The notes: generated by a model not told the origin, from the letters alone. Positions 28 through 53,570 are shown, numbered from the whole stretch's first letter. The stretch: 63,819 nt of DNA, filler included, from Choristocarpus tenellus KU-1152 (GCA_964200185.2; 12 parts of 12 records of this genome joined end to end with filler, not necessarily neighbours in it), one strand, 5' to 3'. Made by a program: numbers and translations.

Positions 28-1081
28 CGGTGCATTTTTGCCGTGTGAAGATGTTTAGGGGTGTAAGGTTGTCATGATTTCTGATTCAGAAAAAATGGGA
101 AGCAGGACAATTCTAGGACCCCTAGGTAAGATGCAAGCTACAAAGAACATCACTGGGGTCATATTTGATCGTGCTACTGTACCAGGATTGGGATAGAAGA
201 AACGATAGGTTGGCTTAATTTACTGGAAAAAATAACACCACAAACCTTCAGTTGAACACCGCAAGGGTCATAAATAGCTACGACCAACCATCATGTTGTT
301 GTTGTGCTTTATCGATTTAAGTCTTCCAGAACTAACAGTGATAAGTCATACACCAATAGCATCAAGTAAGTGTGAAACGAAGTACAAAGTAATTTCGTTC
401 CTTAGGGGTATACCCTTCATCACGTCCAAATGCCTACTGTGCGTGCATCCACTCAAAACTCTGTGTGGACATCTACTGTGGGGTGTAGATAAAAAGGACG
501 TGGAGCTGGCAAGAGCTGTAACGAACCTTGATAATTTGATACACAGAGTAAATAATTTATCATTCTTAAATCTCCCAAAAGTCTTTGCTTGCTTAGACTC
601 TCTGTTGACACATATATCAGTAACACGTCCATCAAAGGGGAGCAAACGTTTCTTACTTCTAGCACTTGATTTCTAATTGCTTTGTGTCCATACTCATGAG
701 GTACTCGGAGTGTTGCTTCTGCACACACTGAGGGATGGAACACAAAGGTTGACTGGTACTATTATTACCGCCCTTGCCAACAAAGAAGAAGATATAACAT
801 CTGCACCCGCAAGATGTCTAATTACCGCACCCAAACAGATGACCCCATTCCTAAATCCAAAACCCTAAAAATGGTCAGAAAGGCCTCCAATGCAGTATAT
901 TTGAGGTATCATCCACTTGCTTGCTGCCTTGTCTCTCAGAGACCAAAATCGCAGGAAATGTGCCCACCTATGCAACTCGATAAAATTTCGTGTTTCCACC
1001 CCCTGTTGAGCAAAGTATGCCCTGCCCACAGAATTTGGCATTGAACTCTGAGTCTAGCTCCTCTCCCTGTGAAGTAGGATA

Positions 1082-1259
1082 GGCTCAAAGTATCTGTGAG
1101 GGGGTGCCGGCTGTCCATTTGGGGACAATTTTTTCATGTCGCGATTTTTAGGTGATTTGGTTGCATACATCACATGGATACTGTAAATACACTTTTCCTT
1201 ATTTTGGTTCAAATGGACACCTTGGTGTAGACCCCCCCCCCTCCCAGATACTTTGGGCC
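1082..1259 (+). mobile_element. MITE family A, full copy
   Basis: TIRs GGCTCAAAGTATCT...AGATACTTTGGGCC with inner inverted GTCCATTTG/CAAATGGAC; TSD not preserved. Confidence 0.9.
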
Positions 1260-1780
1260 AACCCTAACCAACAGTAATTGCATTTCGAACACTCAACCCA
1301 ATCCGCGAAGAGACAGATTTCACCTTACATCTAACATGTCGACGTAGTTGCAATGCGGCAGCTATCGTCAGAATTAATTCCAGTGAACTCAACCGAACCT
1401 TTTTCCGAAATTGGAACATGGGTTGAGGTGACATATGTTGAGAGTAATCAGACAACTGATCCGAAATAGAACTAAGATTCCACGATCCAGTTTCACGCAC
1501 CGCAACATCCGTCTGTTGAATGTTACATGGTGACACCATTGATACACACGTGTTAGGGCTCCGATACAATTGGAACCTTTCCGATAAGGTTTGTATTGCG
1601 TCGCAACGTGATCTCGATTTAACTCATGCGGTGGTATCAACACACGTCTGTAGATTAGTAAAAAACTCGCGATAACCTCACCTTAGATGGCTTCTGCCAA
1701 CCGACAGAACATACCAAATTTCTATTTTGATGTATGTTCCAAAATTACCATATTCGTTTCAAACTGGTGCATTCATGCTT

Positions 1781-2238
1781 TCACTCTCGCGGTTCCACAT
1801 TATGTTTTCCTGCTCATTGTTCTTGTTCCAAAACGGTACAACCCACCCCCAAACGTTTTGCCGAGCTTTGGAAATTGATTGCCTTTACCGTCCGACATTA
1901 CACATCAAATTTCTTCATTACTGTCTGGCCTATGTCAGACACAAACCTGTGCATGGTTGCCCTCCTCACATCTAACCCAGGTCGGCGCGTAAATCCTTTT
2001 CATCTTCATCTTTCACTTTCGCGGGTCAACGTAATGTTTTCTTGCTTAGGGCTCTTGTTCCAAATCGGTACACACCACCCCCAGCCGTCTTACCATGCTT
2101 TGGAAATTGATCGTCTTTACGATCCGACATAAAACATCAAATTTCTTCATTACTGTCTGCCCTATGTCAAACACAAACCTGTGCTTGGTTGCCCTCCTGA
2201 TATCTAACCTGGGTCGGCACGTAAATCCTTTTCATCTT
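1781..2238. repeat. Degenerate tandem duplication, 2 x about 230 bp
   Basis: 1781-2007 and 2012-2238 align, e.g. CTTTGGAAATTGAT...ACATCAAATTTCTTCATTACTGTCTG...GTAAATCCTTTTCATCTT in both. Confidence 0.85.
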
Positions 2239-2580
2239 TGCGTACGGTATTGGTGCGTTCTCATATTCATTATTCCTTCCATGTCGGTGGGACTTATTGT
2301 TTGCCGCATGTTCACAAATAGCAGTCTCCACGGAAAGCGCTAAGCCGTCCTCATGACGACAACAGCGCTTCGCCCTTATCATCTCACGTTTTCCTAGCCC
2401 ATGCATGGACACGAACCTCGCACTCCCTACAGATCCCGTTATCATTGACCACATACTCTATCACTGTTTATTCAACAACACCCTTGCTGTTATCGCCTAA
2501 CAATAGTATCCGCCCCAGTGTCGATATCCTTCTCGTTTGCTGATATTGTTGTCATAAAATATCCCCCCCTACCTTTACAG

Positions 2581-5034
2581 GCAGTCGACCGGAGACCCAA
2601 AGAAACCTGAAGAGGAAAAGACGACAGAGTTGAGACCCGAAGTATTTGTGAGGGGGAGGGGGGGTCTACACAAGGTTGTCCATTTGAGGCAAGATCAGGA
2701 AAAGTGCATTTAAATTATCCATCTGACGCATGCAACCAAATCACCCAAAAATCGCGATATGAAAGAATGGACCCCAAATGGACAGACACCTCTCCTCTCA
2801 GATACGTTCAACCTTGATCATGTCAAACCTCAGCGCGACCCGTACGATCGACCTGGCCACATCTGCTTTCTTGTCCCAGAGGTACAATGCCTATCTCCTT
2901 GATAAGGATAGGGTAGAGTCCATGTTTTCAAAGCTGGGGCCGGACCCACACGTTGCCGCCAATAAGCTCGCAGGGATCCTGAGTGGACAGTCTTTCTCTT
3001 TGTGCTCGAGATGGGAAACCATCAATAAGTTCAAGGCCGACATGCGAAGGGCAAAGGTATCCTCTGATGTGTCCGACGGTGAACTGCTCACGCACCACAT
3101 TGCCAACGGCAACCTGAGCATAGATGAGGATGGCGACGCTAGGGATCCGGACAACGACGATAAGTCTTGTTTTGTCTGAATGGACAACATAGAATATTGC
3201 TCCTGAGGGTAATCGAGTGCGTGGAGAAGGAGGATAATATCCCATGTGGCATCAACCTCCCAGTCCACGTCACAGCACAATTGGCCTCAGACGTAGGAGC
3301 GAACGTCCAGATAGGCAAGCACAGGAGATTCATGTGGAAGATATATCCACTCGACCAAATTCCACTGCCGCCCAGGCCGCGGAAGAATGGGCATCACAGC
3401 CGTGGAAAATCAAAAGGTCATACTTAAGGAGAATGCACACCAAGGTTGTCCTCATCAAAAAGGCTGTCCTGGAGGTCGCCATGCAGGTCATGAACGACCT
3501 CAAGAGGAAAGACGAGCTCAGGATCGGCCCCGACGCCAAGGAGTCCTCAGCCGGGTCTTCAGAAGAGCCTGTTCCAAAGAAACAATACACCCTGAGCAAA
3601 GAGGTACTCAAGAGAGTGTCAGGTTCGTCCTCTCATCTGTCCACAGTATTTGAGTTCGTAACAAGTCAGCTCACAATAAACACCCTGATATCGCACATTA
3701 ATTTAAACCCATAAAATCCACAAGAAAAAAGGGATCTCGTGTTGTGGGAGGATGTGAAGGAGGGTACATTCTACCTGGACATCGTCAAATACTCAGAGGG
3801 CGTTACCTTGAACACCAGTGGCGAACATGCCGGCAAGTAGTTACATCATTGTACAATATCGCCATACGTGAACATCAAACATCGTTCCCTACACCAAACA
3901 CACCGCCTCGACCCTCAGAGATCTTACCGACATTGGACAGTTTCACAATGTACACAGACACAGGGTTCTCGAGTTTTATATGTTGCGAAGATGCTCGTCA
4001 AACAGATATATTCATACTTACGCTGTGTTGATATCGACACAACCCAGCGAAGGGTGGGAAATTATGTCGTGGTTCATGTCCTATAGTCCTATACGCATCT
4101 TCTTAACCCAATGTTACAAGCCCTACTTGTCTTCCTGATCTATGGGCTAAAAGAATCCGCCCAAGTACGACAAACCGCACGTACTCCTTTCCTTCCATAT
4201 TTTCCTCAGCCTTTGCTTCCTCGTCTATATCCTCCTTCGCTTACTCCTTTCACCAAACTTGCCTCCTCCCTTGCCTCCTAATCCTAACCCTTCTTCCCGT
4301 TGTTTTGCCTCCTACTTCGCCTCGTCCTTTGCCTACTCCTTCACTATTACAGAGATAACATGAGTCACAAACATTGTCATCACGCCAGAGAAAAACGCCA
4401 CGTCCGAGCACGACCTTGACAGGTTCAAGTCCGAAACGAGCGCCGCCCACGAGAGAGCAGTCGCCCTTCTCCAGACCCGACCAGGAGGCATCGTAACCAC
4501 ATGCACCACCCTCGGGGACAACCACGATCCGGATCGTATCCAACTCCTGATCAACGAACTCTCCACCCTCTGCAATTTTGCGCTGGTGAAGACACCGATA
4601 GCTGGTGGCGTATCCACGCCTATACCTTGAGGAGGACCCGACCCATTAGGTGATAAAAAGGAACAGGAGATGATCCATCGCCTAACCCTACCGTAGGTGC
4701 GAGAAGCGATTCACTACATGGGGGAAAGCATCCAACCACACCCTCGGAACATGACTCTGAAGGTGATAGGGGCCAGTCCAATTGTAACGCTTTGTCATGT
4801 CCAGAGGAAGATGTCCAGGAGAACGTGGGGCGGCGGCTAGGCACGTACTCAGAGTCCATGCCTGTCAGGAGTGACCACGGAATGTCCCCAAACGTCCATG
4901 CAGTGGGTAGCAGCGGCGACAAGTCCATCGATGCTGACCCAACAGGTCGAGGGAACAGGAATGACAATACTGTGGAGCAAAGTGTGAACTACGCCCATGC
5001 CGACTCAACAACACAAAGGGTTGATTTGACATAA
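2581..5034 (+). pseudogene. Disrupted multi-exon gene of unknown family containing an NGQHR (ParB/DGQHR-like) motif
   Basis: Acceptor TTTACAG ends at 2580. The frame QSTGDPKKPEEEKTTEL continues as IMSNLSATRTIDL after removing the MITE at 2634-2813 plus one TTGA. Frameshift near 3165 into CLNGQHRILLLRVIE; further exon-like segments to 5034 carry stops. Confidence 0.5.
2634..2813 (-). mobile_element. MITE family A, full copy inserted in a coding exon
   Basis: Reverse-orientation copy flanked by TTGA at 2630-2633 and 2814-2817. Confidence 0.85.
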
Positions 5035-5040
5035 TCAAGT

Positions 5041-5221
5041 GGCTCAAAGTAGCTGGGAGGGGGGTTTGGCTGTCCATTTGGGGTCCATTTTTTCATATCG
5101 TGATTTTTGGTTCATTTGGTTGCCATACGTCGGATGCGTAATGCAAATGCACTTTTCCCGATTTTGGTCCAAATGGACACCCTCGTGTAGACCCCCCCCA
5201 CCCCCCCAGATACCTTGGGTC
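5041..5221 (+). mobile_element. MITE family A, full copy
   Basis: GGCTCAAAGTA...TACCTTGGGTC; 3-bp direct flank AGT/AGT. Confidence 0.9.
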
Positions 5222-5235
5222 AGTTACTCACATAG

Positions 5236-5335
5236 NNNNNNNNNNNNNNNNNNNNNNNNNNNNNNNNNNNNNNNNNNNNTTAATTAATTAANNNNNNNNN
5301 NNNNNNNNNNNNNNNNNNNNNNNNNNNNNNNNNNN
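5236..5335. other. Artificial contig linker N-TTAATTAATTAA-N (11 such linkers in the window)
   Basis: The same all-frame-stop spacer recurs at about 5280, 8981, 12953, 18799, 23111, 30491, 33532, 41770, 48014, 52160 and 61136. Confidence 0.98.
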
Positions 5336-5521
5336 ATGGAGCTTTTCATTGAGGATGGGCTTGACCCAAAATTGACTGGGATAAAGTGTCGATATATAAA
5401 ATTGACTGGGATAAAGTGTCGATATATATTTTTTTGTATCAAGATACAATATCCCAGTCAATTTTGGGTCAAGCCCATCCTCAATGAAAAGCTCCATCCT
5501 CAATTTTTGAAATCGGCTGTT
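5336..5521. mobile_element. Foldback MITE family C
   Basis: Arm ATGGAGCTTTTCATTGAGGATGGGCTTGACCCAAAATTGACTGGGATA and its reverse complement at about 5450-5497; related ends at 13009-13062 and 30660-30723. Confidence 0.8.
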
Positions 5522-5992
5522 TTAGGCAGGGTGGTGGACTGGGCAAGACGGACCAGAGAGGACGAGGTATAGGCTGGACAAGTGCAAGACTGCTTGGACT
5601 TGCAGAAAACTGTGGAGTGATGAGAATGTTATAATAGGGGGACCATCGCAAAGTCAAGACAAGACGACAAGAGAATCTTTGATGTGTGACATCCCTGGTT
5701 GAAGAGATGCCCACTACTTGTGGGATTGTTCTCTTGAAAGATTCCACACCTCATATATTCGTAAGACCCTCCGCTGGAATCGGGGATTCCTGATAAGGAA
5801 GCCTCAATCGGTATAACGATATATGACATACAGCAATAACGGTATGACAACAGACAAACCTGCTTCCACATAAGATATTTTCGGTATGATGTGGAAAACT
5901 TCCAAATAATAGAGAAATCAACTCACCCAGGTCATCCTTGGCACTACATCCATAGAAATATGTGTGAATTGCAAAATACTGAAAAAGTGGCT

Positions 5993-6250
5993 GAGCCAAA
6001 GTATCTTAGAGGGTAGGGTAGCGTCCATTTGGGTTCAAAATCCAATGTTGAGATTTTGATGTAATTTTGGCTATGGTGATTGTTAGGAAGTGTCAGTATC
6101 CTTGTTCCGGATGCACCTTTTCGTAACATATATATTTTACCTACTCCAAAACATTTTGGAGTAGGAAAATGTCATAAAAAACGCCGAGGGAAGCCAAGCC
6201 CCAAATGGAAAAACAGGGCAAAACTCGTACCCTCTAAGATACTTTCACTC
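5993..6250 (+). mobile_element. MITE family B (Sola-like termini), full copy
   Basis: GAGCCAAAGTATCTTAGAGGGTA...TACCCTCTAAGATACTTTCACTC; flanks share only GCT. Confidence 0.9.
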
Positions 6251-7194
6251 GCTTATAATGCAAAACGACCTAAGACTGGGTACCTCTCGCTTACTTTGAC
6301 TCTTTCTTGTACATGTATGAGATTCAGGGGATTCAGGGGAGCTTGAGAGGGGTAGTAATCAAGGGATTCAGGTTGAGAAATTAGTTATACATGATAGGTG
6401 ATGATAACCTCCTGGTTTTGGTGGTGGTTGAGGTAAACTGTACGTACCCAGAGCCTCTAATGTTATGAGTGGGTTTGTCAGGGGCAACTGACCTGATGCA
6501 ATAATCTCTATAACCTCAATCACGAGCTCCTCTGCATCACATTATACAAATTTGTACACGCTCTTCAGACCTTTCCTTGACCCAAAGGTAGACTTGAAGA
6601 TGGGGCTACCATTCCCCCCACAGACCACTGTCACCAATGGAAACCTGACAACTCGAGATGTTCTATACTACTGGAGAAAAGGTCAGACTCAATCACTGAC
6701 ACCAGAAGTAGACAACAATCTTCATGACTGAGACATCTATCTTCGATTGTTCTACTCCGCCTTCTTCAAAATAGGAAACCTGCAAAGGTCAGTTTCTGAT
6801 TGTGGGCCAAAAATTGGAGATGGCACAAGGCTATTTTGCTGGTCCTCTCTTTGTTGTTCTTCGTGGATATTGGCATTCAGAAGACCCTTTCCCGCCAAAG
6901 ACTCCACCACTTGCCACCAATTGGAGTGTAGTTTGGTAACACCACTGTCCATGGCCACCTCGGAATCTCTCATGATGAATTGCAGTCAAAACAACTGGTT
7001 GTGATGAGCAAGAAGTGAACACTCTTGGGTGATGTCAAGTCACACAATGCCCACACACAGATGAATGAGGATCATCCACCACTAGGTCCAGATCTCAACA
7101 CTGACGTGTGGGCTAGATAGAAGGGACAGAGTTCCGAAAAAGGAAGGGATTGAGGGGGACCTCAAACAAATGAAAGGATGTTCAACTGACAAAT

Positions 7195-7449
7195 GACAAT
7201 GTATCTTAGAGGGTAGAGCCACGTCCATTTAAGGTCCAAAATCCAATGTTGCGATTTTGATGTAATTTTGGCTATCGTGTTTGTTAGGAAGTGTCATTAT
7301 TCTTGTTCCGGACACACCTTTTCATAACATACACATTGTACTTGTTCTGAAATATTTTGGAGCAGGAAAATGTCATTAAAAACCCGTGGGAAGCCAAGCC
7401 CCGAACGTACAAACAGGAAAAATTCGTACCCTCTAAGATACTTTCACTC
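7195..7449 (+). mobile_element. MITE family B, full copy with a degenerate left end
   Basis: Same body as 5993-6250; AAAT flanks both ends. Confidence 0.88.
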
Positions 7450-7515
7450 AAATAGTGGAACTGAACAGGAGTCAGACGCTCAAAACCAATTGTCTCATGA
7501 ACCCTGTTCTACTTC

Positions 7516-7516
<1 letters not shown>

Positions 7517-7547
<31 letters not shown>

Positions 7548-9162: not shown

Positions 9163-10264
9163 TGCAACGATCAGGGAGACTCGTGATGCGAAGAGACATC
9201 AATTGGGAGTCTATGTGGGATAGTAATATGTATGATGGCACCCGACATCAATCTTCAGGGTTCCTGCTGTGGAAGGGGGAAGGAATTTTACCGGTGACAA
9301 CTAGCGAGGAAATGAAACCTGAGGGTTCTAGTGATGAAGAACCTGGAATATTTTTGGAGGGTGTGGTGGAAGTAATTAGTGTGGAGGAGGATTTGCGGTT
9401 AGGTACTACTGAAGAAGTACACTTGAGGTCTGGGTCAAGAGGTTGTGAACTGATAGATGAGAACTGCGTTACGTCATCTCTGCAGCAGGGGAGTGGGAGG
9501 CTTGAACCTAGCATGCTGTATCAGCTCCGCGAGTATAACGTGGGACTGTCACTAACTCCTTGGGCACTGTGGAGAACGACTAGTCGAACGGCCTACGTGG
9601 TAAGACACAAGGTGGAAGAGGTGATTGGCGACGAATTGGGACTGGGGGGACCAGGGGATATTGTGGGTAGTGAGTTGCCTCCTGCCCCTACGACTGTGAA
9701 GTAAACTCTTGAGTCTCGGGAGTCCAAGGAGTGGGTCGAGGCTCCATAGGCTAAGATGGATTAATCACTAATGAAACATGGGTGCAGGATCCTTGTCCAA
9801 CTCAGGCGAATGTCCTACAGATGAAATGTTGAAACGTGATTTTGTATGAGAATGTGTTGTTGTGATGTGTCTGGCTTGTGACGAAGAAGATCATAACGCA
9901 ACAAAGCACTGATGAATTTGTCTTGGTAGGTCTGATGACATGCTGTTCTCAGTCAGACAGTGTTCGATGTGAAGGTATGTTTGATTGTGCTATGATTAAC
10001 ACGTTTAGAGGCAAGTGTGTGTCATAGTGCAACAAGACACCTGCGGGTTTGTCTGGTGCGTCTGAAGGGATGTCTTACTCAATCAGACTTTGGTTGGAGT
10101 GAAATGTGTACTGGTACGTCTGTGGCATGTTTTACTACTCAGAGCAGACTGTGATTGATAGAACTGTGTGATCATTCATTGAGATGCTCAAATGAAGAAA
10201 TTCATCCTCTGTGAAGAGGGGTGTCACCTTGGCAAAGGAGGGTTTCGAAGGATGGTTTTAACTC

Positions 10265-10602
10265 TGTTTATATTGCATCCTGGCGTGTGTCATATACGTG
10301 TTGAAGAGTGATGGGATGTCTTATTGAGGGGACAATGCCAGTGAAGTAAAAGATAAGAATCAATACATACTATGCAACTCATGAATTGTGTGAAAAAGAA
10401 GTAACATAGGAAGAAAGAAGAAACCAAGCTTGGATCCGTATCTAACGAACTACTGCCACACATCTTCTGTGTGAGTTGTGATGATGAGCTAATGCTGTAA
10501 ATGGGAATAGCGACCATTGCAATGGACAAACCAATGTTCAGTATGGACTGACGATGCTGTATCGTATCAAAGCAAATCGAATGAGTAGCCTATGTTTTAA
10601 CA
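10265..10602. mobile_element. Probable LTR of a repeated family
   Basis: TG...CA bounded; its 3' end ATGA(G/A)TAGCCTATGTTTTAACA recurs at 9037-9082 and 42117-42162. Confidence 0.55.
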
Positions 10603-10619
10603 CGAAATACATTTTTTCG

Positions 10620-11540
10620 AGGAAGGTAAATTTAGTTGGACTAATGGACCGCTGGAAAGCAAGACTGGTGGTACAAGGGTTCCGACAACAGCCTGGTATT
10701 GACTGACATGAAAAGTTCGCACCGACAGCTCAAATGTCAAGCCTGCGTACGATCCTCGCACTGACTGTTTGGGGTAGGACCTAAACATGGCAGACGCAGT
10801 GAGGGCTTTCATCAATGCAAACCTGGATGAAGACCTGTATGTAGAGCCATCAGAGGGAGTGGTGACTGAATTCGATGGGGTGGTTGGGAAGCTATAAAAA
10901 TCATTTCATAGGATTGCCCAAGCATAATGTAATTGGAATGCCCTGCTTGTGGCATCATTACTGGAGCTGGGACTGGAGCAAAGTGAGACTGATCTTTGTT
11001 TGTTTTAGTGGGTGTTGGATAGGGAACTGGTACTAATAACGCTCATCCATGTCGATGATATGCTTATGGCCAGCAAGGGGTCTATGTATGCCATAGATGT
11101 AGTTCAAGGATTAAACAAGAAATTCCTGTGGAGTACCTTGGGGAGAAGGGACAGTTTCCATAGACCAACAGGTAAATGTTGAAAGCTTGGCGGCCAAATG
11201 TGGATAACGAGTAGCTGCGACCTTCCTGCTGCTACTACTAAAACCTTGTTGAGGAGGGACCAATTGGAGATGGTTGTCGTGCAATGGTTGGGAGTCTGAT
11301 GCGGGCATCAATCATGACCGGGTCAGATGTAGCATCAGCTGTAAGGAGCCTAGCAACGAAGTGCGTGAATGCCCCATAGTTACGGATTGAAAAGGGGCAG
11401 AAAGAGTGATTGTTTATTTGCTGAAGGATACGTAGGAGGGGCTTGACCTTTGGTGATTCCAGTTTTTATGGTGATGCACCCTAGAGACCAACTCATTGGC
11501 TATGCTGATGCAGACTACGCCAAATGTGAGGAGTCAAGTC
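10620..11540 (+). mobile_element. Decayed Ty1/copia reverse transcriptase and start of RNase H
   Basis: Translated fragments KARLVVQGFRQQPGID, AFINANLDEDLY, WNALLVASLLELGLEQSETDLCLF, LIHVDDMLMA, IGYADADYA, with stops and frameshifts. Confidence 0.9.
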
Positions 11541-11544
11541 AGCT

Positions 11545-12380
11545 TTGCTTTCCGGAGATAGTACGAAACATCGTTTATGCTGCATTCTTGGTGATTGTTT
11601 CTAATGTTGCAAACTCGTCAGCTACTTGAGAGTATGACGGTGGAGGGATCGAGAACACTGACGAGGCTTCTCCTTTTGTCACAACCCCGATGTGCTACCA
11701 CCTCCCATAAACCCATTGTCATTCTCATCACACCCGAGCTTTCATTGTCTGACTGGTGCAAGGATTCCTCGAGGAGCTGGTCTTTCATGTTCTATAGTAT
11801 CGCATTAGCCACTTCATCGTTGTCTTCCACACCCATCCACGCTCTCGCTGCCCCGATGGAAGCCTGAGACAGTTTTCCGCTGGGTCTGAGGTGCAGAGTG
11901 TCAAGAACATCGGAGAGATGCTCATCAATATATAGGGACACCCTATAGAACGTACCTCTACGAGCAAAATGGCCACCCGTAATACTACAGTACACAGTAC
12001 AGACACACAGTACGACAGAAACGAGTGCAAAATTTCAAAAAATTCAATCATGATCCTCATCAGCAGACAGTGCAGAAAGACAATTCAATCAAACATCACA
12101 ATCAACCTACTTCCAGACTTTCTATCCACATGCTGACGCACCTCGACATGTTTGGCACCCCTTGCAGACTTGGGAGTCTGACTTCAGCATCTGCGCTTTC
12201 TCCGTGATGGTTGTTGCCTCCTTCTTCAACTTGTAGAGGGTGTTGTGACTGATTCCTTTTGAGCAACCACAGTTCCAGTCATGGTCTTCAGGAGTGTCAA
12301 CGCTTCCACCTTCTCTGCAAAGCTCAATCGCTTACAATTGTCGGCACTGCGTGTCTTGTAGGCTGTGTCTTTCTCCATAG
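11545..12380 (-). mobile_element. Internally deleted pogo/CENP-B-like transposase remnant
   Basis: N-terminal MEKDTAYKTRSADNCKRLSFAEKVEALTLLK resembles the psq-type HTH of pogo/Tigger; acidic C-terminal fragment AWMGVEDNDEV. Confidence 0.5.
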
Positions 12381-13008
12381 ATATATTTGGTAGATTCTAG
12401 ATATATATATTCTTGCCCTTGTTCTTGTTATCGTGGCGCTTTGACGCTGTGTTGTCACCGGCTGGAGGACTCGAAGCCTTGCGATTGGTGTAGCTCACGC
12501 ACAATTACACATGTGTTTCATTTCGCTGGTGCCAACGGATCCATGACGCTGCAAATGCTATGAAGATTGCCGCTACAAAATCGACACTTACGACATGTAT
12601 ATAGTTGCAGACCAAGAGTATTACCCTGTATAATGCAGCTGGATCCCGCGGTGCAGGGCATCGTTATATCCGCACGGTGTAGTCAACTAAACTTGATGTT
12701 ATATACTGTATGCACTGTACTATACAGTACTGAGAGACAAAATACCTCTATGCTGTGTACTGCTAGTCTCGAGCAACTTTGTACGTTTTATTTTGCTTAG
12801 CTTTAGACATTGCTTTTTGCGAAACCCCTTGGTCAAGTACAGTACCTACCCCGATTTTGTGCACCCATGGGCATGCCCGAAAAAAGCGGCACAGAATTGA
12901 TGTGGTACNNNNNNNNNNNNNNNNNNNNNNNNNNNNNNNNNNNNNNNNNNNNTTAATTAATTAANNNNNNNNNNNNNNNNNNNNNNNNNNNNNNNNNNNN
13001 NNNNNNNN

Positions 13009-13062
13009 GTCAAACCCATCCTCCATAGTATGCTCCATCCTCAATTTTGCTGAGAGGCCGTT
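13009..13062. mobile_element. MITE family C terminus at contig start
   Basis: GTCAAACCCATCCTCCATAGTATGCTCCATCCTCAATTTTG matches 5469-5510 and 30670-30710. Confidence 0.75.
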
Positions 13063-13979
13063 ATCTGCCCTAATCTGAGATAACACTTGCTCCTTCTGAA
13101 ACACACCTTCAAAAATACAAAGTATATATCTCGGACATGGCCTATAATAAATGGGTCCCCAGTTTCGATCTCCCTACTCACAAACGTGATTTATCTATAT
13201 CCATGTTCCCTTTGAAGTGTCTGCCCACAACGTCACAGGATACAATCTCCTTCGAATTGTGTCTGCCCTAATCCGAGTATACACTTGTTCCTTCTGAACT
13301 GGACCTTCAAAAATGACAAAGTATATAGTTCTGACTAGACCTACAATTGATTGGTCCTCCGTTCCAATCTTCCCCGTTACAAATGCAAGCACTATCAAGG
13401 AATAGACTTACATTATTCATGACCTACTCGATATCTGAATATTGCCTGTCCTATGCCCCCCAAGCACAAAGCATACTCAAGGCTGCTGCTAGTGCGTAAA
13501 AGAGGCAAGAACAAAAAAATAAAGAAATAAAGAAAGAAAGAGAGAAGGGCTAATGAGAGCGACAAAATAAAAAAACACAAAATAAAAGATAAACAAACAA
13601 TAAAAATAATATAAAATAGAGAAATAAACGGAAAGGAAAGAAGAAAAAAATCAGTGGGTCATGAAGGAAACAAAAATGAAAACTAAATTGAAAAAGAAAA
13701 GAAAAATAAAGTGGAAGAAAGAAAAGAAGAAATAAGTTGGTAAATAATGGGAGTAATAAATGGGAAAAATGATATTAATAAAATGATAAAATAAACAAAA
13801 TGGTGGGACCAGGACAAAGAAGATAAATAGGAAAATCTACGAAGAACAGAATTTTGAGATATAAAATAAAAATTATAAATATTCAAGATCACAGAAAGTA
13901 GTTACAAAGTAGAAAAGAGGGAAAAGAAAAAAGAGTAATGTATTGGTTGCATTCTTTTTTAAAGACTACAGGCTGTGCA

Positions 13980-15770
13980 ACCCATATATTACTGTATGCT
14001 CTGATGTGAGCAACTTCTTGGTTCCAGCTTCTGGTATCCGGCATTCCTTTCAGTGACTATGACTATCAATGTGTTATTCCCTTAATCTGGCATACACCAG
14101 CTAATCCTCACCTTGTCTTTCGGGTATACAGTTCTTACCTGGTGGGAGTTCTCGCAGAGAAGCCAGTCAATACCTGGACCTGTGCACCACCTGTCTCTTC
14201 CTCTTTCATCCTTCCACGACCTTTGAAACTGTTATCTATAGGGAAGAAACATAACACGTCCTTTCGGGGCAAGGGGGGAACATTAGTTGGGTGAGGTCTT
14301 GTGTCAGGATTGTAAATGTCTTAGAAGGCATAATGAACATCCAACTGTAGTGAGATAAAGCTGTTCACCGCTGCTCTTTTTGTTATCCAGTATGACAACT
14401 TACGCATTTTAGAACTTTCCTTTGTACTACAGTGCCATTCGCTAAGGGCTGACAAGGGTACACTGCTACTGCGGGATCTGGATATTGGAACTCTGTCAAA
14501 AGGTACACATGGTGACTGTGGGGATGGTCGGCAGACTTGACTTCTCTAAATGATAGTATGCTCTGGTGTCGTCTACAAAATGTTGCTCCTAACATTATTT
14601 CCTAAGGCAGCCCCACCGTCTACCTAAATGTCACATTTCACAGTTTATTTTCTGGGGGAAACGCTATTGGCAGTTTGCATGACCCCAACACCTGCATTGG
14701 TGTAATATTGCACCCTCTGGGGTTTGCTACATGTAAGGTATGTTTGCCTGCTATGTTGAGATGTGGTAAGTCGTTGCCACCCCCCAAAGAGCACTTTCGA
14801 ACCAGAAAACAGACGAGACGTAATTCCCCCCTCATGCACCTGTGTCAAGGAGTACCTGGACAGGCATTCTCGAATGAACTTTTGTGTGGATGCCATAGCA
14901 GGGCGGATATTCATACTTTACTACGCTGAGCAGGTGTCATGGCGAATATTATCAAGTTGGGAATGGGAGACTTACTGTCTATAGTTGGAATAACGGGGAT
15001 CCCTGGAGCCTCAGACTCCAGGGCTTAGCTTCAAGACGACTCTGAAGCATTCGAATCGGTTGGGCTTCTTGCGAATAGTGGAGGGAGTTCAGAGTCTTGC
15101 ATCACTGCTATGTATTGGAGTTGTGTATTTGTATAGGCTACCACGGTACGCGACGCTGCAGTGGATTGAGCACCTGGATATCCTTGGTGGATTCTTAAAA
15201 GGTATGAGAAGTATCCCTTGGGAACTACCGAGTCGTCATGTGTATACCTGCACTCACCGGTTATGGACCTGAAGCAGTGTTGACCATAGGCATGATGGAA
15301 GCAAACTTGGTGTGCCTTTAGCCATGCATCGACTTCATCCTAGGAGGAAGATGGTGGAGGTAAGGCTTTGCCGCTCACCTTGTCTGTGGGTAAGGAAAGT
15401 GGGGATGGACTCACAGGCTGGGTAATGGATGTGAATGATTGAACGGGTTTTGATGCATTGATTCTTGGAACGAATAAGGTACCGTATTTACCAGGAATGG
15501 AGGAAGGTTGGTTGTTTAAGGCAGCACGGACAGCAGTGAGGAGTTCTGGGCTAAAACAGGTTGGAGCATTGGCATGAGGGCTGCCAGTACACTCTTGACA
15601 ACCTCTTGGTGTGGCAGTGAATTTTGGCTTGTTACCTCTTCTGACGTGGACATCCTATTCTGGCGAGGTAGTCCCAGTTCCTGCCTGACGATCGGGTTTT
15701 TGGCTGAGGCAGCGAACGGGTGTGACATGCTAGCGATAGCATGCGCATTTGACATGATACCCAAAGCAAT
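13980..15770 (-). mobile_element. Decayed Ty3/gypsy-like gag-pol remnant
   Basis: Aspartic protease motif VQVLLDTGA*GGNYVS at about 14815-14862; surrounding frames are broken and the boundaries are approximate. Confidence 0.55.
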
Positions 15771-47969: not shown

Positions 47970-48656
47970 NNNNNNNNNNNNNNNNNNNNNNNNNNNNNNN
48001 NNNNNNNNNNNNNTTAATTAATTAANNNNNNNNNNNNNNNNNNNNNNNNNNNNNNNNNNNNNNNNNNNNGGGGGGGTCTACACCACGGCGTCCATTTGGA
48101 CCAAAATCAGGAAAAGTACCTTTACATTATCCATCCGGTGTGTAACAGTATGTTTGTGAGATCAGGAACCGATTATGAGATAAGGAATGAGAAATATTTT
48201 GAAACCATCCTGCACGCCACCGATCAATTTCAGTGTGAAAGCTTTCAAATGGTCAGATTCTTGAAGTTGTTGATTTTTTGGAGTGAAAGCTTGCGAACAC
48301 AAGAGGGAGAGCTCATCGATATTTTTGTGAAAAAGCTTTCAAATCGCCAAAAATTATAAGCTGTTACTTGTGGAGTGAGAGCTTGCAATCAGCGAAAGAA
48401 AAAGGGGATAACCGATATTTTTGTTAATAAAGCGTTCAGACGACCAACTGATGATGGGAAGTCGGTAGTAGTAGTGGTTTGAAAGCTTGCGGTGAGCATC
48501 CATATTTCACAATTGAGTGGCAGCAGTTCCTTGCATGAAGTATAAACGACGAATGAAACCACGTTCCATGTAGTATGTCAAATATTCTGAGTGTTTGCTT
48601 TTTCACCCACCCCCTCCCTGTCATATATGTCAGCGTAATTTGTGTCCTCTCCATTG

Positions 48657-49202
48657 TTATGATTCCTCTTCATCTTCATCCTCGTCATCCGAACTTTCCG
48701 AACCACCTGCCCTACTTCCTGGAAAGAAATACTTATGCAGCAATTCCTCTCCTGCTACGATGTCTCTAGTTAGCCTGAACTTCAGCGTGTTAGGTGGGTA
48801 ACTCAGTGCTTCCCAGAGTGGGCCTTTCCGTGCTCTTGCTCCCCCATCCCTTCCCCCCGTCGATCCCTTCTCAAGACTCCAATTTGTGGGGATAAACTTC
48901 GAGTGCCGTTCAACATTCGCCTTCTCCAAGTCCGCCCTACATGAGTTCATGAGCGACAAAAAGAGGCAACGTGGTGGCACTAAAAACAGTGCGGCGTGCG
49001 GCCGCGACACTTCACCGCCTACACACATAGAAGCCACATCATTCGTCACCATGTACCGAGGAACGCCATCAGTCACGATGGCGTCATGAACCAAATTCTC
49101 CGTATCGTACACTACGAAGGTTCCGAAGCAAGAAATATCTATGAAGTCCCCAGCCTTGATGTCCTTCACCGCAAATAGCCCGACGCCATGAGTATCAGAC
49201 CC
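48657..49202 (-). CDS. SET-domain lysine methyltransferase, terminal exon
   Basis: Acceptor TTTTCACAG, then GSDTHGVGLFAVKDIKAGDFI...LMNSC..ANV...FRLTRDIVAGEELLHKY and an acidic tail; no stop in 181 codons. Confidence 0.88.
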   Translation of the reverse strand, partial: GSDTHGVGLFAVKDIKAGDFIDISCFGTFVVYDTENLVHDAIVTDGVPRYMVTNDVASMCVGGEVSRPHAALFLVPPRCLFLSLMNSCRADLEKANVERHSKFIPTNWSLEKGSTGGRDGGARARKGPLWEALSYPPNTLKFRLTRDIVAGEELLHKYFFPGSRAGGSESSDDEDEDEEES

Positions 49203-49555
49203 CTGTGAAAATGTCAGAAAATATCAGGAAAAACGCGGGTGGGTGGAAAGGCGTAACAGCGAAGAGAGCTCGTAAGTAGTGAGATACCATGGTTGCGATG
49301 ATCAGTCGACAACTAGACAGAAACGTTCCACACACGGTTCACATACAAGCTGAAAACTGAACCTGACAAGATTGTTGACTCTGCCTACCTTCTATCGCCT
49401 GGAGGACAGCACACACCAATCAATGTCAAATGGCATGCATGTATTAGCCAACACTGCTTGCTAGAAGAACCTCAATTGAGTGACTTACGATACAGCCACA
49501 ACAAACAAGCCCTCACATCCGTATGTGAGGTTTAACCGTCCCTCAATGTGCATAC

Positions 49556-50943
49556 CTTTATCTTGAGGTCCTTGGATGCAGCGGCCTTCTGTGCCACCTG
49601 CCGGGCGGGGGAACCATCCGATTCTTCTTGTCTGGACGCCATGTCATCAAGCACCGTGCGTGGAACGTTCGTCTCCGGAATGTTTACCGGCTGGAGGCGC
49701 CCTCCCACCATTTTCTGGGGCTGGTCAGCAGTCAGGATCTTCGACCATAGTCCTGTCTTGGTGGCATGATCGCAAACACTAACCAGGTTATCCGTAACGG
49801 CTTGGAGCCTCGAAAGTTCGGGCACGAGGGCGACGAGCGTCCGCCCAGCTTTCAGCACCACCCGCGAAAGCTCGCTGTCTCGATCATACTACTGCTTCTC
49901 AATCCCCAACTTCCATCTAGTATGCATCGTAAGACATGTATGTGTGTTGAACACCGAGCGAAGTCGCCTACTGCAACTTAGTTTTTGTTGGTGTGTATAA
50001 AAAAATATCCATACTTTCACTGCTTCTCCGAGCAGGTTCTTCGGCAGGGGGGCCAGCTTCATACCCACACCAGTGATGGAATGAGGGGATGTTGCAGGAG
50101 GTATTGGGGTACAACAAAAACCAACCGTGGGCCAAACAAGGCAAATAAAGCAAAACGCACATTCCAAGATGTGTGTGGCAAGGACCAAATAAAGCAGAAG
50201 CAAAACACAACTCGCGAGACGCGGGGCACAATGAACCAGTTCTATTCTCGTCGAGACTGCTGTATGCTGTTATATCTCTGGTACTTTGCCATGGCGATGA
50301 ATATATCTACAGGTGCAACAGCAGTCGATCAAACTCTGCCGCAATACACCAGCCACAACAACAACCACACTGACTGACTGCTGTCCTACACAACACTGCT
50401 GCTGTTGCTGCTACACAATACATCAGGCACATGGTCTCATTTTCTTCTTGCTCCCAGCTGTACAGCAGTGGTAGTAATAGGAGACACCAAAGGTGACATA
50501 TGTATATATATATTGTTCGCAACAAGCTTTTGAGGGAGAGAGAGGAGAGAGGAGAGCGATTTTCTACAGCAGCAGTGATCTTGCACCAGACAGACTAGGA
50601 GAAAGCAAGAGAGAGGAGACCCAACCAAAGTTTACACACCCGCCCTGCTTCACAATCGAAGCCTCTCACTGCTGTTCAGCGCTTGGATCCCTCTCCGCGT
50701 ATACAACTTTGTGCATTACGTTTTTGCCTGAAAATTCATGCTGAGACTCCCGATTACAATAATACTAGTAAATACTTGATTCACATCAAACCTGCCGATG
50801 AAATACCGCTCAAGCAGCGCTTTCAAGCCGCCTCCGGAGGCCACGTTGGGCTGCTGCTGCTGCTGCTGCTGCTGTTGAGAGGGCAAGGCAGAAGCGGGCC
50901 GCTCCGACGATCCCTCAGCGGACCTTTCTTGGGTGGAAGGCAT
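49556..50943 (-). CDS. Upstream exons of the element's gene (about 50943-50792, ?-50015, 49888-49556), unknown N-terminal region
   Basis: MPSTQERSAEG...polyQ...ERYFIG then CAG|GTTTGA; ...LLGEAVK|GTATGG; 333-nt phase-0 exon YDRDSELSRVVLKAG...DLKIK|GTATGC; some junctions unresolved. Confidence 0.55.
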
Positions 50944-53570
50944 GGCGTGTGGGTTTGTGATATGGTGGTGCGTGTTGGAGTGATGCGAGGGGTGTGGGGC
51001 GGTGGAGTTGCATGATGTATTTACGCAGAGTTCCGCCACCCCAACAGAAAAACGTACAGCTCAACGACCCTAACAGGTCGGATAAACGCGGCTCGATAAA
51101 CACGGAGATCAACCATATATAGCAGGGTAGATATTCCGAAAGAGGCTCCAACTTGCAGGATATGCATAACCCACAGGGAAGCTTGCGGGAAATATTCCGA
51201 TCTTTGTTCTGATTCTTGAAATCGAAACATACATGGCTGTTATTCCAACGGGCACGGGTTAACCTCGGAAATCGGAACATACTTGTCTGTTGTGCTAACA
51301 GTGCACGGGGTGCACTTCGAAACACTCCAATTATTTTGACTGTTAGATATTCCGAAAATGGCTCCAACGTGCCGGTTCCATAACACACAGGGAAGCTTTC
51401 AAGAAATATTTTTAATTTTTGTTCAGGTTACGATTTCAAATAGGAACGTTTATGGTTTATCAATGTTGAACAGATAGACTTCGGACCATTCCGACTCTAT
51501 TTAACTAGTAGTCTACTGTGAGAGTACGATTTTTGCCTGGTAGTCTTTTACCTGTCGAGGAAAACCCGTGATTCAGTTCTAAAAACAATCACCCTACCTG
51601 AAAATCTGACGGATAGTTTTTTTTTAATCGATTTCGAGATTCGTTGGCTTGTTTGATTCCGACGACCGAGCCTTTCACCTCACAAATCGGAACAGCCGTC
51701 AAGGCAGCCGATCAAAAATCAGGTGCTGTAGATGTCCTCTACTGCGAGCACTTCTTCAAGAACAAGCTTTCGCCGTGATGGTTGTTAGTTGTCCACCTGC
51801 GGGTCGCGCGAATACCTAACGGTGAGTGTCCCCTCTCTGCTATATGTACAGAGTAGGCATCATAAGATTGCACACAGGGCTGTTCATGGGTATGGAATGC
51901 ATCACTGTAACCTGTCATGATGTGGTTCAAACCTCGGTTGCCATTAAAACTTTCACACTGAAATTGATCGGCGGCGTGCAGGATGGTTTCGAAATATTTC
52001 TCATTCCTTATCTCATAATCCGTTCCTGATCTCACGAACATACTGTTGTGTGCAACCAAATTACCCAAAAATCGCGACATGAAAAAATTGACCACAAATG
52101 GACAGTCGCCACCCCNNNNNNNNNNNNNNNNNNNNNNNNNNNNNNNNNNNNNNNNNNNNTTAATTAATTAANNNNNNNNNNNNNNNNNNNNNNNNNNNNN
52201 NNNNNNNNNNNNNNNGGAGTGGGGGAGGGCAGTACCCTCCCATCCAATTTCTCGGGGGAATTGGTGCACTGATTTTTTGGAGCCCTTTCTTCGCCCTAGT
52301 TTCTTGTGGGGGTGTGTCTGTAAATGTGGGTGGGTGGATTAAGTATGAGGTGGCAAAGCAAGGCAACAATTGCTGCACCATGCTGCTGTTCCAGATATTT
52401 CACCGGATCAGCAGTTTTTTTTTGGGGGGGGGAGGGGAGTTGGGGTAGGAGGGAGGAATGGTGATGCAATTTTGTGGAATGAGAGTTTTGTTGGGTTATC
52501 CTTGATTGTGTTGATTGCATCATGGGGGTTGTTCATTGAAATTGACCCTCTTGGAGCTATCTTCAACGAGGATTTTTGAAACTCATCTCCTATTGTTGTG
52601 TTGTTTAACTATTTATATTGTTTCATATTACTACTAGTGCGTGCTCTAGAGCTTCCAAGTCAATCATGATGGTGATACTTACTACCTACGTACATACATA
52701 CATGCATCAAGATACACAGTTTTTCTTTTGTGGAGGCATAATCAACTCTTTAGTCGAAGTCACCGTTGTTGAACAGGTACCTATTGATAGGGTTAGAGGG
52801 TATAGTAACAGCAACTTTAATACTAGCCGACAATTTTTTTTCATTATTTTTTTCGGATCTTGTGAGGGGGGTAATCTCGAATATTTTGTTTATATTTTAG
52901 TGTTCACACAAAAAACTGTGTCTGGAGATTAATTACAAGCTCTTCGTTCCTCATCTTATGTTGGTCGGCACTTGCCTTTGCTGCATCTGATTGTGTTGCA
53001 TTATCACACTACTATCTCTCTCTCTCTCTCTCACTGGCACTCAATGCCCCAGAGATGGATTCCCCTTTCTGATTGCCTTCGTATGTTACCCACCCAGGTG
53101 TTCAGGAAGTGAGCAGGTGATACCTAATGTGGGACTGCTCTACCTTCATCCTGTACCACCGAGACATACATATACATCCATACATAAATACACAATCCCA
53201 CACAGTGTTCATTCTGTCCTAGTCTTTTCACTATTCCAGGATCCCTAAATTAAAGACTCCTTCCATAGCAATAATGATATACCTGCTCTTCATCTGAAGT
53301 TACTTCAAAAGAGAGGGAGGCTCCTATGTGCACTGCAACGGCCCTATTGGTTGGGTGGTTCGTCTCCGTTAGTACATCATGGAATTTATTCAGTTCTGCT
53401 GATTTGAAACCCATCTGGAACTCTAAATTAAAATATTGTGAAAAGTGTCCAAATTTTCACACTAAATAATGATCAACGTAGTAAGAAGTACCTACATAAA
53501 AGTATTTTTTGCTGATAGAAGGGAATGTTGCCCATTCTTTCAAAAACATTGTACTACGACACGAAAGTCG

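Follow-up and report, generated by a model that had tools for sequence, protein, structure and literature searches.

A contig of the brown alga Choristocarpus tenellus (assembly GCA_964200185.2) carries a minus-strand gene that ends in a SET domain and lies between two long terminal inverted repeats (TIRs), which raises the question whether this gene belongs to the host, was passively captured, or is a regular component of a mobile element. The contig is complete at 4046 bp and occupies positions 48070-52115 of the window, the whole stretch of 63,819 nucleotides (filler included) that was analysed; coordinates given below without a locus name refer to this window. We consider it very probable that the element at 48144-52047 belongs to a brown-algal family of Sola1-type cut-and-paste transposons with a SET accessory gene, of which it is a non-autonomous copy with internal deletions.

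A repeat search of the contig found one long inverted pair, with arms of 102 nt that are 95% complementary and 3700 nt apart (48144-48245 and 51946-52047). The element between their outer ends measures 3904 bp, close to the near-identical repeats of about 110 bp around 3906 bp (48143-52048) that a preliminary description of the locus had reported. The termini, AACAGTATG at the SET-proximal end and CATACTGTT at the far end, are the same in related elements of 16.4 and 17.6 kb. Six element ends from three assemblies share the terminus ...CATACTGTT, beyond which the sequences diverge, and the same terminus abuts different flanks in the loci L002, L003, L005 and L008. The element is bordered by a perfect 4-bp target site duplication (TSD), GTGT at 48140-48143 and 52048-52051, with no extension to 5 bp. 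Two full-length relatives, L006 and the reverse complement of L007 (L007rc), are flanked by TCGT and ACAT, respectively, each again a perfect duplication of 4 bp and neither of 5 bp.

The flanks had been described as collinear halves of one miniature inverted-repeat transposable element (MITE), into which the unit inserted as a block, and the comparison with empty sites bears this out. Positions 48070-48137 and 52048-52115 match two contiguous halves of intact MITE copies of about 135 bp (L001 3230-3362 and 4102-4235). Many MITE contigs that bridge the insertion site without the insert are present in three public runs of the same organism (X1-X3), in which the MITE is very abundant, with a summed contig depth of 5e4-4e5. 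Reconstruction of the empty site gives CCATCCGGT[GTGT]GCAACC, equal in length to the MITE consensus CCATCCGACGTATGCAACC, which was built at this site from contig loose ends in the runs. Removal of the element and one GTGT leaves CCATCCGGTGTGTGCAACC, a sequence of the same length as the consensus that differs from it by three transitions. The ends of the host MITE are of the GGGG...CCCC type, and the contig both starts and ends inside it, which indicates that the assembly broke at this abundant repeat. Contigs from X2 and X3 were also found to join the right terminus (52046), through six extra letters (AATTTG), to position 50505, indicating another rearranged or nested copy in the genome.

These borders bear directly on whether an ordinary host SET gene could lie by chance between two inverted repeat copies. 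The gene is annotated as protein-coding in the NCBI record (P0001), as would be expected of a host gene. However, the TSDs, the insertion within a MITE whose intact copies provide an empty-site equivalent, and the several copies with different flanks and, in other species, conserved termini all argue against a chance arrangement, and we give it next to no probability.

Further copies place the contig within a larger family. Two other C. tenellus contigs of the same assembly (L001 and L002) carry copies that are 91-94% identical, the L002 copy ending at the same terminus and continuing into a different flank. Ascophyllum-type contigs were obtained from ENA ERZ26962164, and exons in them are 100% identical to the Ascophyllum nodosum protein P0022. 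Complete elements are found at L006 4015-20418 (16.4 kb, with TIRs of 363 nt that are 88% identical) and, in reverse orientation, at L007 2552-20187 (17.6 kb); the two are collinear at 86-92%. Additional copies, in part with deletions, are present in L004, a Logan contig, and in L008, a contig of A. nodosum. The full-length layout consists of two divergently transcribed genes between TIRs of about 100-360 bp, a multi-exon DUF7869 transposase gene and an accessory gene with a small SET domain at its end. In all relatives compared, as in the contig, the SET exon with its preceding intron and exon adjoins the same TIR. It is noted that L006 lacks the transposase exon with the GHTHD block (L006 6862-6998 compared with L007rc 5302-6000), and that L008 has a different internal deletion of 3 kb (L006 15634-18706; at L008 9716-9722). 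Such differences indicate that independent deletion derivatives are common in the family.

The absence of a recognizable DDE transposase inside the element, already reported in the preliminary description, was confirmed, as neither a Pfam scan of the open reading frames (ORFs) of the contig nor tblastn gave a signal for DUF7869 or any other transposase domain. ORFs of at least 80 aa, including those from a first scan of the 5' half of L006, likewise contained no transposase. With stop-to-stop ORFs of at least 50 aa, the 5' half of L006 yielded two DUF7869 pieces on the minus strand, at 7266-7520 (E 4e-10) and 6463-6789 (E 1e-5). An exhaustive HMMER search with the first piece returned P0027 of Pylaiella littoralis and P0022 and P0023 of A. 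nodosum, together with environmental-assembly proteins of 600-1000 aa that have DUF7869 as their only Pfam domain. The resulting alignment shows three acidic blocks, IDG.D, LQ.DNCSRENKN and GHTH..ID, with an invariant aspartate (D323) in the middle block. All of these blocks are present in L007rc, as IDGSD, LQCDNCSRENKNR and GHTHD. The tblastn alignment of P0027 to L007rc consists of seven segments that descend from 9518 to 4924, and their strand is opposite to that of the SET gene. A longer copy with a transposase, which the preliminary description had proposed to look for, is thus available in the Ascophyllum-like L006 and L007, while the limited search for one in Choristocarpus was negative.

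An AlphaFold2 model of the P0027 domain (predicted local distance difference test score, pLDDT, 75-95) has a beta-beta-beta-alpha-beta-alpha-beta-alpha core. Foldseek matched this model to the catalytic cores of Sleeping Beauty, Metnase/SETMAR, Mos1 and ASV integrase with probabilities near 1 and modest E values of 1e-3 to 1e-2. The fold of DUF7869 is therefore predicted to be RNase-H-like, with each aspartate at the expected beta1, beta4 or helix position.

Sola transposons encode a DDD transposase, generate 4-bp TSDs, have TIRs of 11-1124 bp and may exceed 15 kb (PMC10741241). Sola1-1_Ec32 from the curated Ectocarpus library is 21.5 kb long, with a 4-bp TSD, TIRs of 282 bp, AACCG...CGGTT termini and, on the other strand from its transposase, an additional gene (PMC12477816). 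Towards the C terminus, this transposase reads ...VQVDNTVAENKNNY...VGHTHIQIDQIFS...LENLANFKDL...FQAFKI... (PMC12477816 supplement). By eye, its blocks match those of the DUF7869 alignment in kind and in order (VDN..ENKN, GHTH..IDQ.FS, LANF/IRDL and QAFK/R). The family described here has 4-bp TSDs in three elements, TIRs and, in the full-length relatives, a DDD transposase. The family had been left unclassified in the preliminary description; its TSDs of 4 bp and its DDD transposase of the DUF7869 type point to Sola1. We take the family as Sola1-type and DUF7869 as its putative catalytic core, which would tie this Pfam family to the Sola1 transposase. Partial TSD readings had brought up Harbinger (TSD of 0-3 bp), MuDR (about 9 bp), Transib (5 bp) and Polinton (6 bp), all of which are ruled out by the three clean 4-bp TSDs. 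DUF7869 elements could instead form a separate superfamily that resembles Sola in TSD length only, given that Pfam labels the domain as one of unknown function and that the comparison with Sola1 was made by eye. A separate superfamily is made very unlikely by the block-by-block agreement, seen by eye, with the Sola1-1_Ec32 transposase and by features that the family has in common with that element, namely a TSD of the same length, long TIRs, AAC.G ends and a giant size.

The other gene of the family is defined by its last exon. SET methyltransferases have an N-terminal GxG motif for binding of S-adenosylmethionine (SAM) and a C-terminal ELxF/YxY motif with the catalytic tyrosine. The exon at 48660-49202 (minus strand) is open and 100% identical to the C. 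tenellus protein P0001. The HGVGLFA, LMNSC and GEELLHKY motifs and the acidic tail that had been pointed out are all present, HGVGLFA and GEELLHKY being conserved across the family alignment. The exon also passes, narrowly, the PF00856 profile proposed as a check (E 1.5e-5, with 25.7-25.8 bits where the cut-off is 22.4); 4 of the 12 family members match the profile (best E 7.7e-6). Among its 30 nearest named language-model clusters in the ESM Atlas, 26 are SET. The top cluster belongs to Nucleocytoviricota, and the nearest ones consist of giant-virus and bacterial proteins, about 180 aa long, in which SET stands alone. Judged from profile, motifs and neighbours, 48660-49202 is a weak but real SET exon.

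A similar arrangement is found in Pylaiella, where locus L009 has a DUF7869 gene (plus strand, 10001-14786) beside a divergently oriented SET-like exon (minus strand, 628-181). This exon gives a weak Pfam SET match, is about 30-36% identical to the family, and contains DSPIHGLGLFA, DGIPRY, FLWYLNS and GEELLFHY, with HGLGLFA and GEELLFHY as the equivalents of the two conserved motifs. Directly upstream on the same strand (866-5453) there is an annotated gene of 608 aa with no Pfam match, which may represent the N-terminal part of the accessory protein; it has no detectable similarity to the Choristocarpus penultimate exon.

Whether the SET gene belongs to the transposon or was captured by it had been left open in the preliminary description, along with a proposal to compare substitution rates among copies. 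Between the Choristocarpus, L004 and Ascophyllum-type lineages, the ratio of non-synonymous to synonymous divergence (dN/dS, Nei-Gojobori) of the SET exon is 0.16-0.37, whereas within a genome it is 0.98 (the contig and L002) or 0.94 (L006 and L008). This is a classical sign of a gene that selection preserves in the active lineage and that decays in each inserted copy. The comparison of two Ascophyllum-like full copies was uninformative with regard to selection and reflects neutral decay.

In a Pack-type capture, a non-autonomous element would passively carry a fragment of a host SET gene. The contig without a transposase, its truncated SET gene and the neutral dN/dS of about 1 between copies within a genome are what such a capture would look like. 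However, in at least two brown-algal orders, distant from each other, the SET gene with the same intron occupies the same end of the TIR-bounded elements, and it is linked to the same transposase both in the Ascophyllum-like contigs and in Pylaiella. The dN/dS of 0.16-0.37 between lineages and the absence of a TIR-free host paralogue among the matches obtained also argue against capture, which we regard as extremely unlikely. The position in the elements, the transposase linkage and the divergence pattern favour the SET gene as an accessory gene of the Sola1-type family.

The preliminary description had depicted a spliced minus-strand gene of several exons. Its SET exon and last intron are supported, and further introns are not. 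One X1 contig of 785 nt covers 49747-49555 and 49201-48610 with 0-1 mismatch and skips 353 nt; the junction 49555/49201 is read as an intron at 49203-49555 because a G is shared by both sides. This splice junction reproduces the NCBI model (...DLKIK|GSDTHG...), and in X1 the exons have a depth of about 9, compared with 0-2 for the intron. It should be mentioned that X1, which is not on record as RNA, was taken as such by inference. X1 contigs run unspliced and collinear with the genome through 49848-50784 (including one at 49848-50473), so no additional intron is supported there. The last two exons of the copy in the window appear to be still transcribed and spliced. Farther upstream, an ORF (MPSTQ...RFDVNQ, 50943-50776, minus strand) lies in the region of a putative first exon, and its peptide is conserved; splicing of this putative exon (50509-50922) was not observed. 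A (CTG)n/(CAG)n run at 50851-50876 encodes poly-Q in the putative first exon, and the Ascophyllum-type copies are Q-rich as well.

Between the first and the penultimate SET exons of the longer relatives, the long ORFs (L005 5835-9894) have no Pfam match, and a codon-position test of L004 against L006 gave no coding signal at L006 14598-18700. The penultimate exon shows a third-codon-position bias in the same pair. In view of these two negative results, the early notion of a single long protein with SET at its end, or of a fusion between transposase and SET, was dropped. ParB and DNA-methylase (N6/N4) domains were searched for upstream of SET and none was found.

Although the element had been called complete, comparison with the relatives indicates that it is an internal-deletion derivative and non-autonomous. 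The homology of the contig stops at 49886, at which the SET gene is cut, whereas the exon continues upstream in frame in L002, L004, L006 and L008 (also in P0011). The retained remnant, 49556-49885, is 85% identical to L005 9330-9715. Relative to L005 and L006, the contig lacks about 5.5 kb (L005 3824-9330) and the entire side of about 7 kb by the other TIR, which is the transposase-gene region in L006 and L007rc. Both remaining exons are open. The sister copies are damaged, with a frameshift in L002 and a 43-nt deletion that removes the splice donor in L001. In the window copy itself, six private amino-acid changes beside MNSC (PLPCHFLWYMNSCG to PPRCLFLSLMNSCR; HFLWY..G to LFLSL..R in the family alignment) affect residues that hardly vary among the other eleven sequences. 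On its substitution pattern, this copy is decaying neutrally, and we regard the annotated "gene" P0001 as a transposon remnant and not as a host chromatin gene.

The short element could also be something other than debris, if its truncated 233-aa SET protein were active as a minimal methyltransferase or a family regulator in a successful sub-family. The two open exons, the spliced contig that matches the window copy, and the nearest language-model clusters, the stand-alone SET proteins of giant viruses and bacteria mentioned above, would fit such a protein. Against it stand the private changes near MNSC, the dN/dS of 0.98 to the sister copy L002, the frameshift or lost donor site of the sister copies, and a deletion breakpoint that cuts an exon. 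We consider an active short form unlikely.

Several observations weigh against a Sola1-type transposon with a functional SET gene. The SET assignment is weak by sequence. The canonical SET motif is NHSC, which is not found here: the family consensus is FLWYMNSCG, with M-N in place of N-H, and the window copy reads LFLSLMNSCR, which leaves it doubtful whether even intact members are catalytically competent; the window copy also has the private changes described above. Neither the SET exon nor the family profile matched any sequence in the Protein Data Bank (PDB), and the AlphaFold2 model of the exon, with a mean pLDDT of 43.9, is unusable and too poor for a structure search. No DUF7869 protein or transposase-bearing copy was found in Choristocarpus in a limited search of a fragmentary assembly. 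An intron-less DNA copy could yield the same X1 contig that was read as spliced RNA. The family was assigned to Sola1 from the length of its TSDs, the triad and motifs matched by eye to a single curated sequence, rather than from a phylogeny.

The motif GWGAAAGCTTKC has 13 matches in the contig compared with 1.25 expected, mostly at 48235-48490 beside the left TIR, and it is also present in the inner TIR of L006 and L007rc. Its layout is usual for transposase-binding sites, for which the array is a candidate. In the mechanism that we propose, a transposase supplied in trans would bind the TIRs and the subterminal GAAAGCTTKC repeats, excise the element and reinsert it with a 4-bp duplication, which in the present case would have gone into the MITE and produced GTGT. 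Missing from the window copy are the transposase gene and the upstream portion of the SET gene, of which the last two exons remain. In the master elements, selection is taken to maintain the SET protein. This protein is most likely a SAM-dependent lysine methyltransferase, and its targets would be either chromatin, at the element or close to it, or the machinery of transposition. Precedents are the SET genes of Phytophthora HarbingerS and MuDR and the methylase-SET PAG2 of red-algal Plavaka. A more specific scenario, to which we assign a rather low probability, is that an old brown-algal Sola1 lineage keeps a selected SET enzyme that writes or blocks a histone mark on its own chromatin, for anti-silencing or targeting. 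Brown algae are said to lack cytosine methylation and Polycomb marks.

Choristocarpus represents the earliest-branching brown-algal order. Between Choristocarpus and the Ascophyllum-type copies (L006, L004 and L008), the DNA is 75-85% identical, including the TIRs and the intron ends, and the synonymous divergence (dS) is 0.2-0.6. From the low dS and the 75-85% identity of non-coding sequence between Choristocarpus and Fucales-type copies, the family may have been transferred horizontally between distant brown-algal orders.

The features of the locus are collected in Table 1. Also listed there is another family of short repeats (about 160-210 bp), which are dispersed across the Ascophyllum-type elements and their surroundings; some copies lie inside the elements as nested insertions.

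Table 1. Features of the contig and its element, in window coordinates unless a locus is named
Feature	Position	Strand	Basis
Left half of the host MITE (about 135 bp intact)	48070-48139		L001 3230-3296, 4102-4163
TSD GTGT, left	48140-48143		Repeated at 52048-52051; empty-site reconstruction
TIR, SET-proximal, begins AACAGTATG	48144-48245		102 nt, 95% against 51946-52047; terminus kept at six ends
Subterminal GWGAAAGCTTKC array, spacing about 46-104 bp	48235-48490		Motif count; direct-repeat families D1, D2, D4
3' untranslated end of the SET transcript	48610-48656	-	Spliced X1 contig ends at 48610; X1 depth 0 at 48475-48609
Last exon: SET domain, 181 codons, and stop codon (48657-48659)	48657-49202	-	Pfam SET; ESM Atlas; P0001 identity
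Intron, 353 nt, GT..AG	49203-49555	-	X1 contig; donor and acceptor conserved in L002, L004, L006, L008
Penultimate-exon remnant	49556-49885	-	Frame open from 49885; annotated start codon 49711-49709
Filler	49887-50508		Matches none of the related loci compared; deletion breakpoint 49886/49887 inside the penultimate exon
Homologue of SET-gene 5' region and putative first exon	50509-50922	-	73.5% identical to L005 3413-3824 (= L006 12862-13273)
Internal region, subterminal here	51348-51829		Matches L006 12249-12537 and 11094-11224; about 7-8 kb from the TIR in full-length elements
TIR, far end, finishes CATACTGTT	51946-52047		Repeat search; terminus comparison
TSD GTGT, right	52048-52051		Pairs with 48140-48143
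Right half of the host MITE	52052-52115		L001 3299-3362, 4168-4235
Second short repeat	L005 91-251, 4461-4671, 12556-12764, 15147-15267, 15624-15838, 16005-16166		

The combination of Sola1 and SET appears to be undescribed in the literature searched. If the proposed reading is true, a Sola1 lineage whose SET accessory gene is under purifying selection and conserved in several brown-algal orders would be another independent recruitment of SET by a mobile element, and the family would offer a concrete, testable candidate for the interplay between giant transposons and host silencing in brown algae. Transposons with chromatin- or DNA-modifying enzymes are rare, and they are now recurrent in algae and oomycetes, as in HarbingerS, MuDR, Plavaka and the Ectocarpus Sola1. 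Among the closest known systems is Sola1-1_Ec32, a giant Sola-1 element likewise from a brown alga (Genome Biol 2025, PMC12477816), which has in common with the family the 4-bp TSD, a long imperfect TIR (282 bp, compared with 102-363 bp here), AAC.G termini, a size of 16-21 kb and an accessory gene opposite to the transposase strand, in addition to the by-eye agreement of the transposase blocks. In contrast to the SET-ending gene described here, its accessory gene encodes a 1104-aa ParB-like and DNA methyltransferase protein, and its termini are AACCG instead of AACAG.

HarbingerS and SET-carrying MuDR elements of Phytophthora have an accessory gene of the SET histone-lysine-methyltransferase type beside the transposase, as they are described from Kojima & Jurka (2014, Repbase Reports) in PMC12730594. 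By that description, which is the basis of our comparison, they are also stramenopile DNA transposons with a SET accessory. They belong to other superfamilies, with a TSD of 0-3 or about 9 bp and unrelated transposases. The Plavaka (EnSpm) elements of the red alga Bostrychia, giant DNA transposons of an alga as well, contain SET in the accessory PAG2 (bioRxiv 10.1101/2025.02.11.637652); there a DNA methylase domain (PF01555) is joined to it, and the carrier is of the CACTA type. SETMAR/Metnase of primates combines SET with a DDE/D transposase, and the predicted DUF7869 core resembles the Metnase transposase fold. However, SETMAR is a domesticated host fusion in which a SET gene that already existed was joined to a mariner copy, whereas in the brown-algal family SET and transposase are encoded by separate genes within a mobile element. 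The vSET-type proteins of chlorella viruses are small stand-alone SET proteins of about 120-180 aa, similar in size to the exon described here and equally devoid of pre- and post-SET cysteine clusters. Unlike these proteins, the SET domain of the brown-algal family forms the C-terminal exon of a spliced gene that is longer, and its sequence has no detectable match among solved SET structures.

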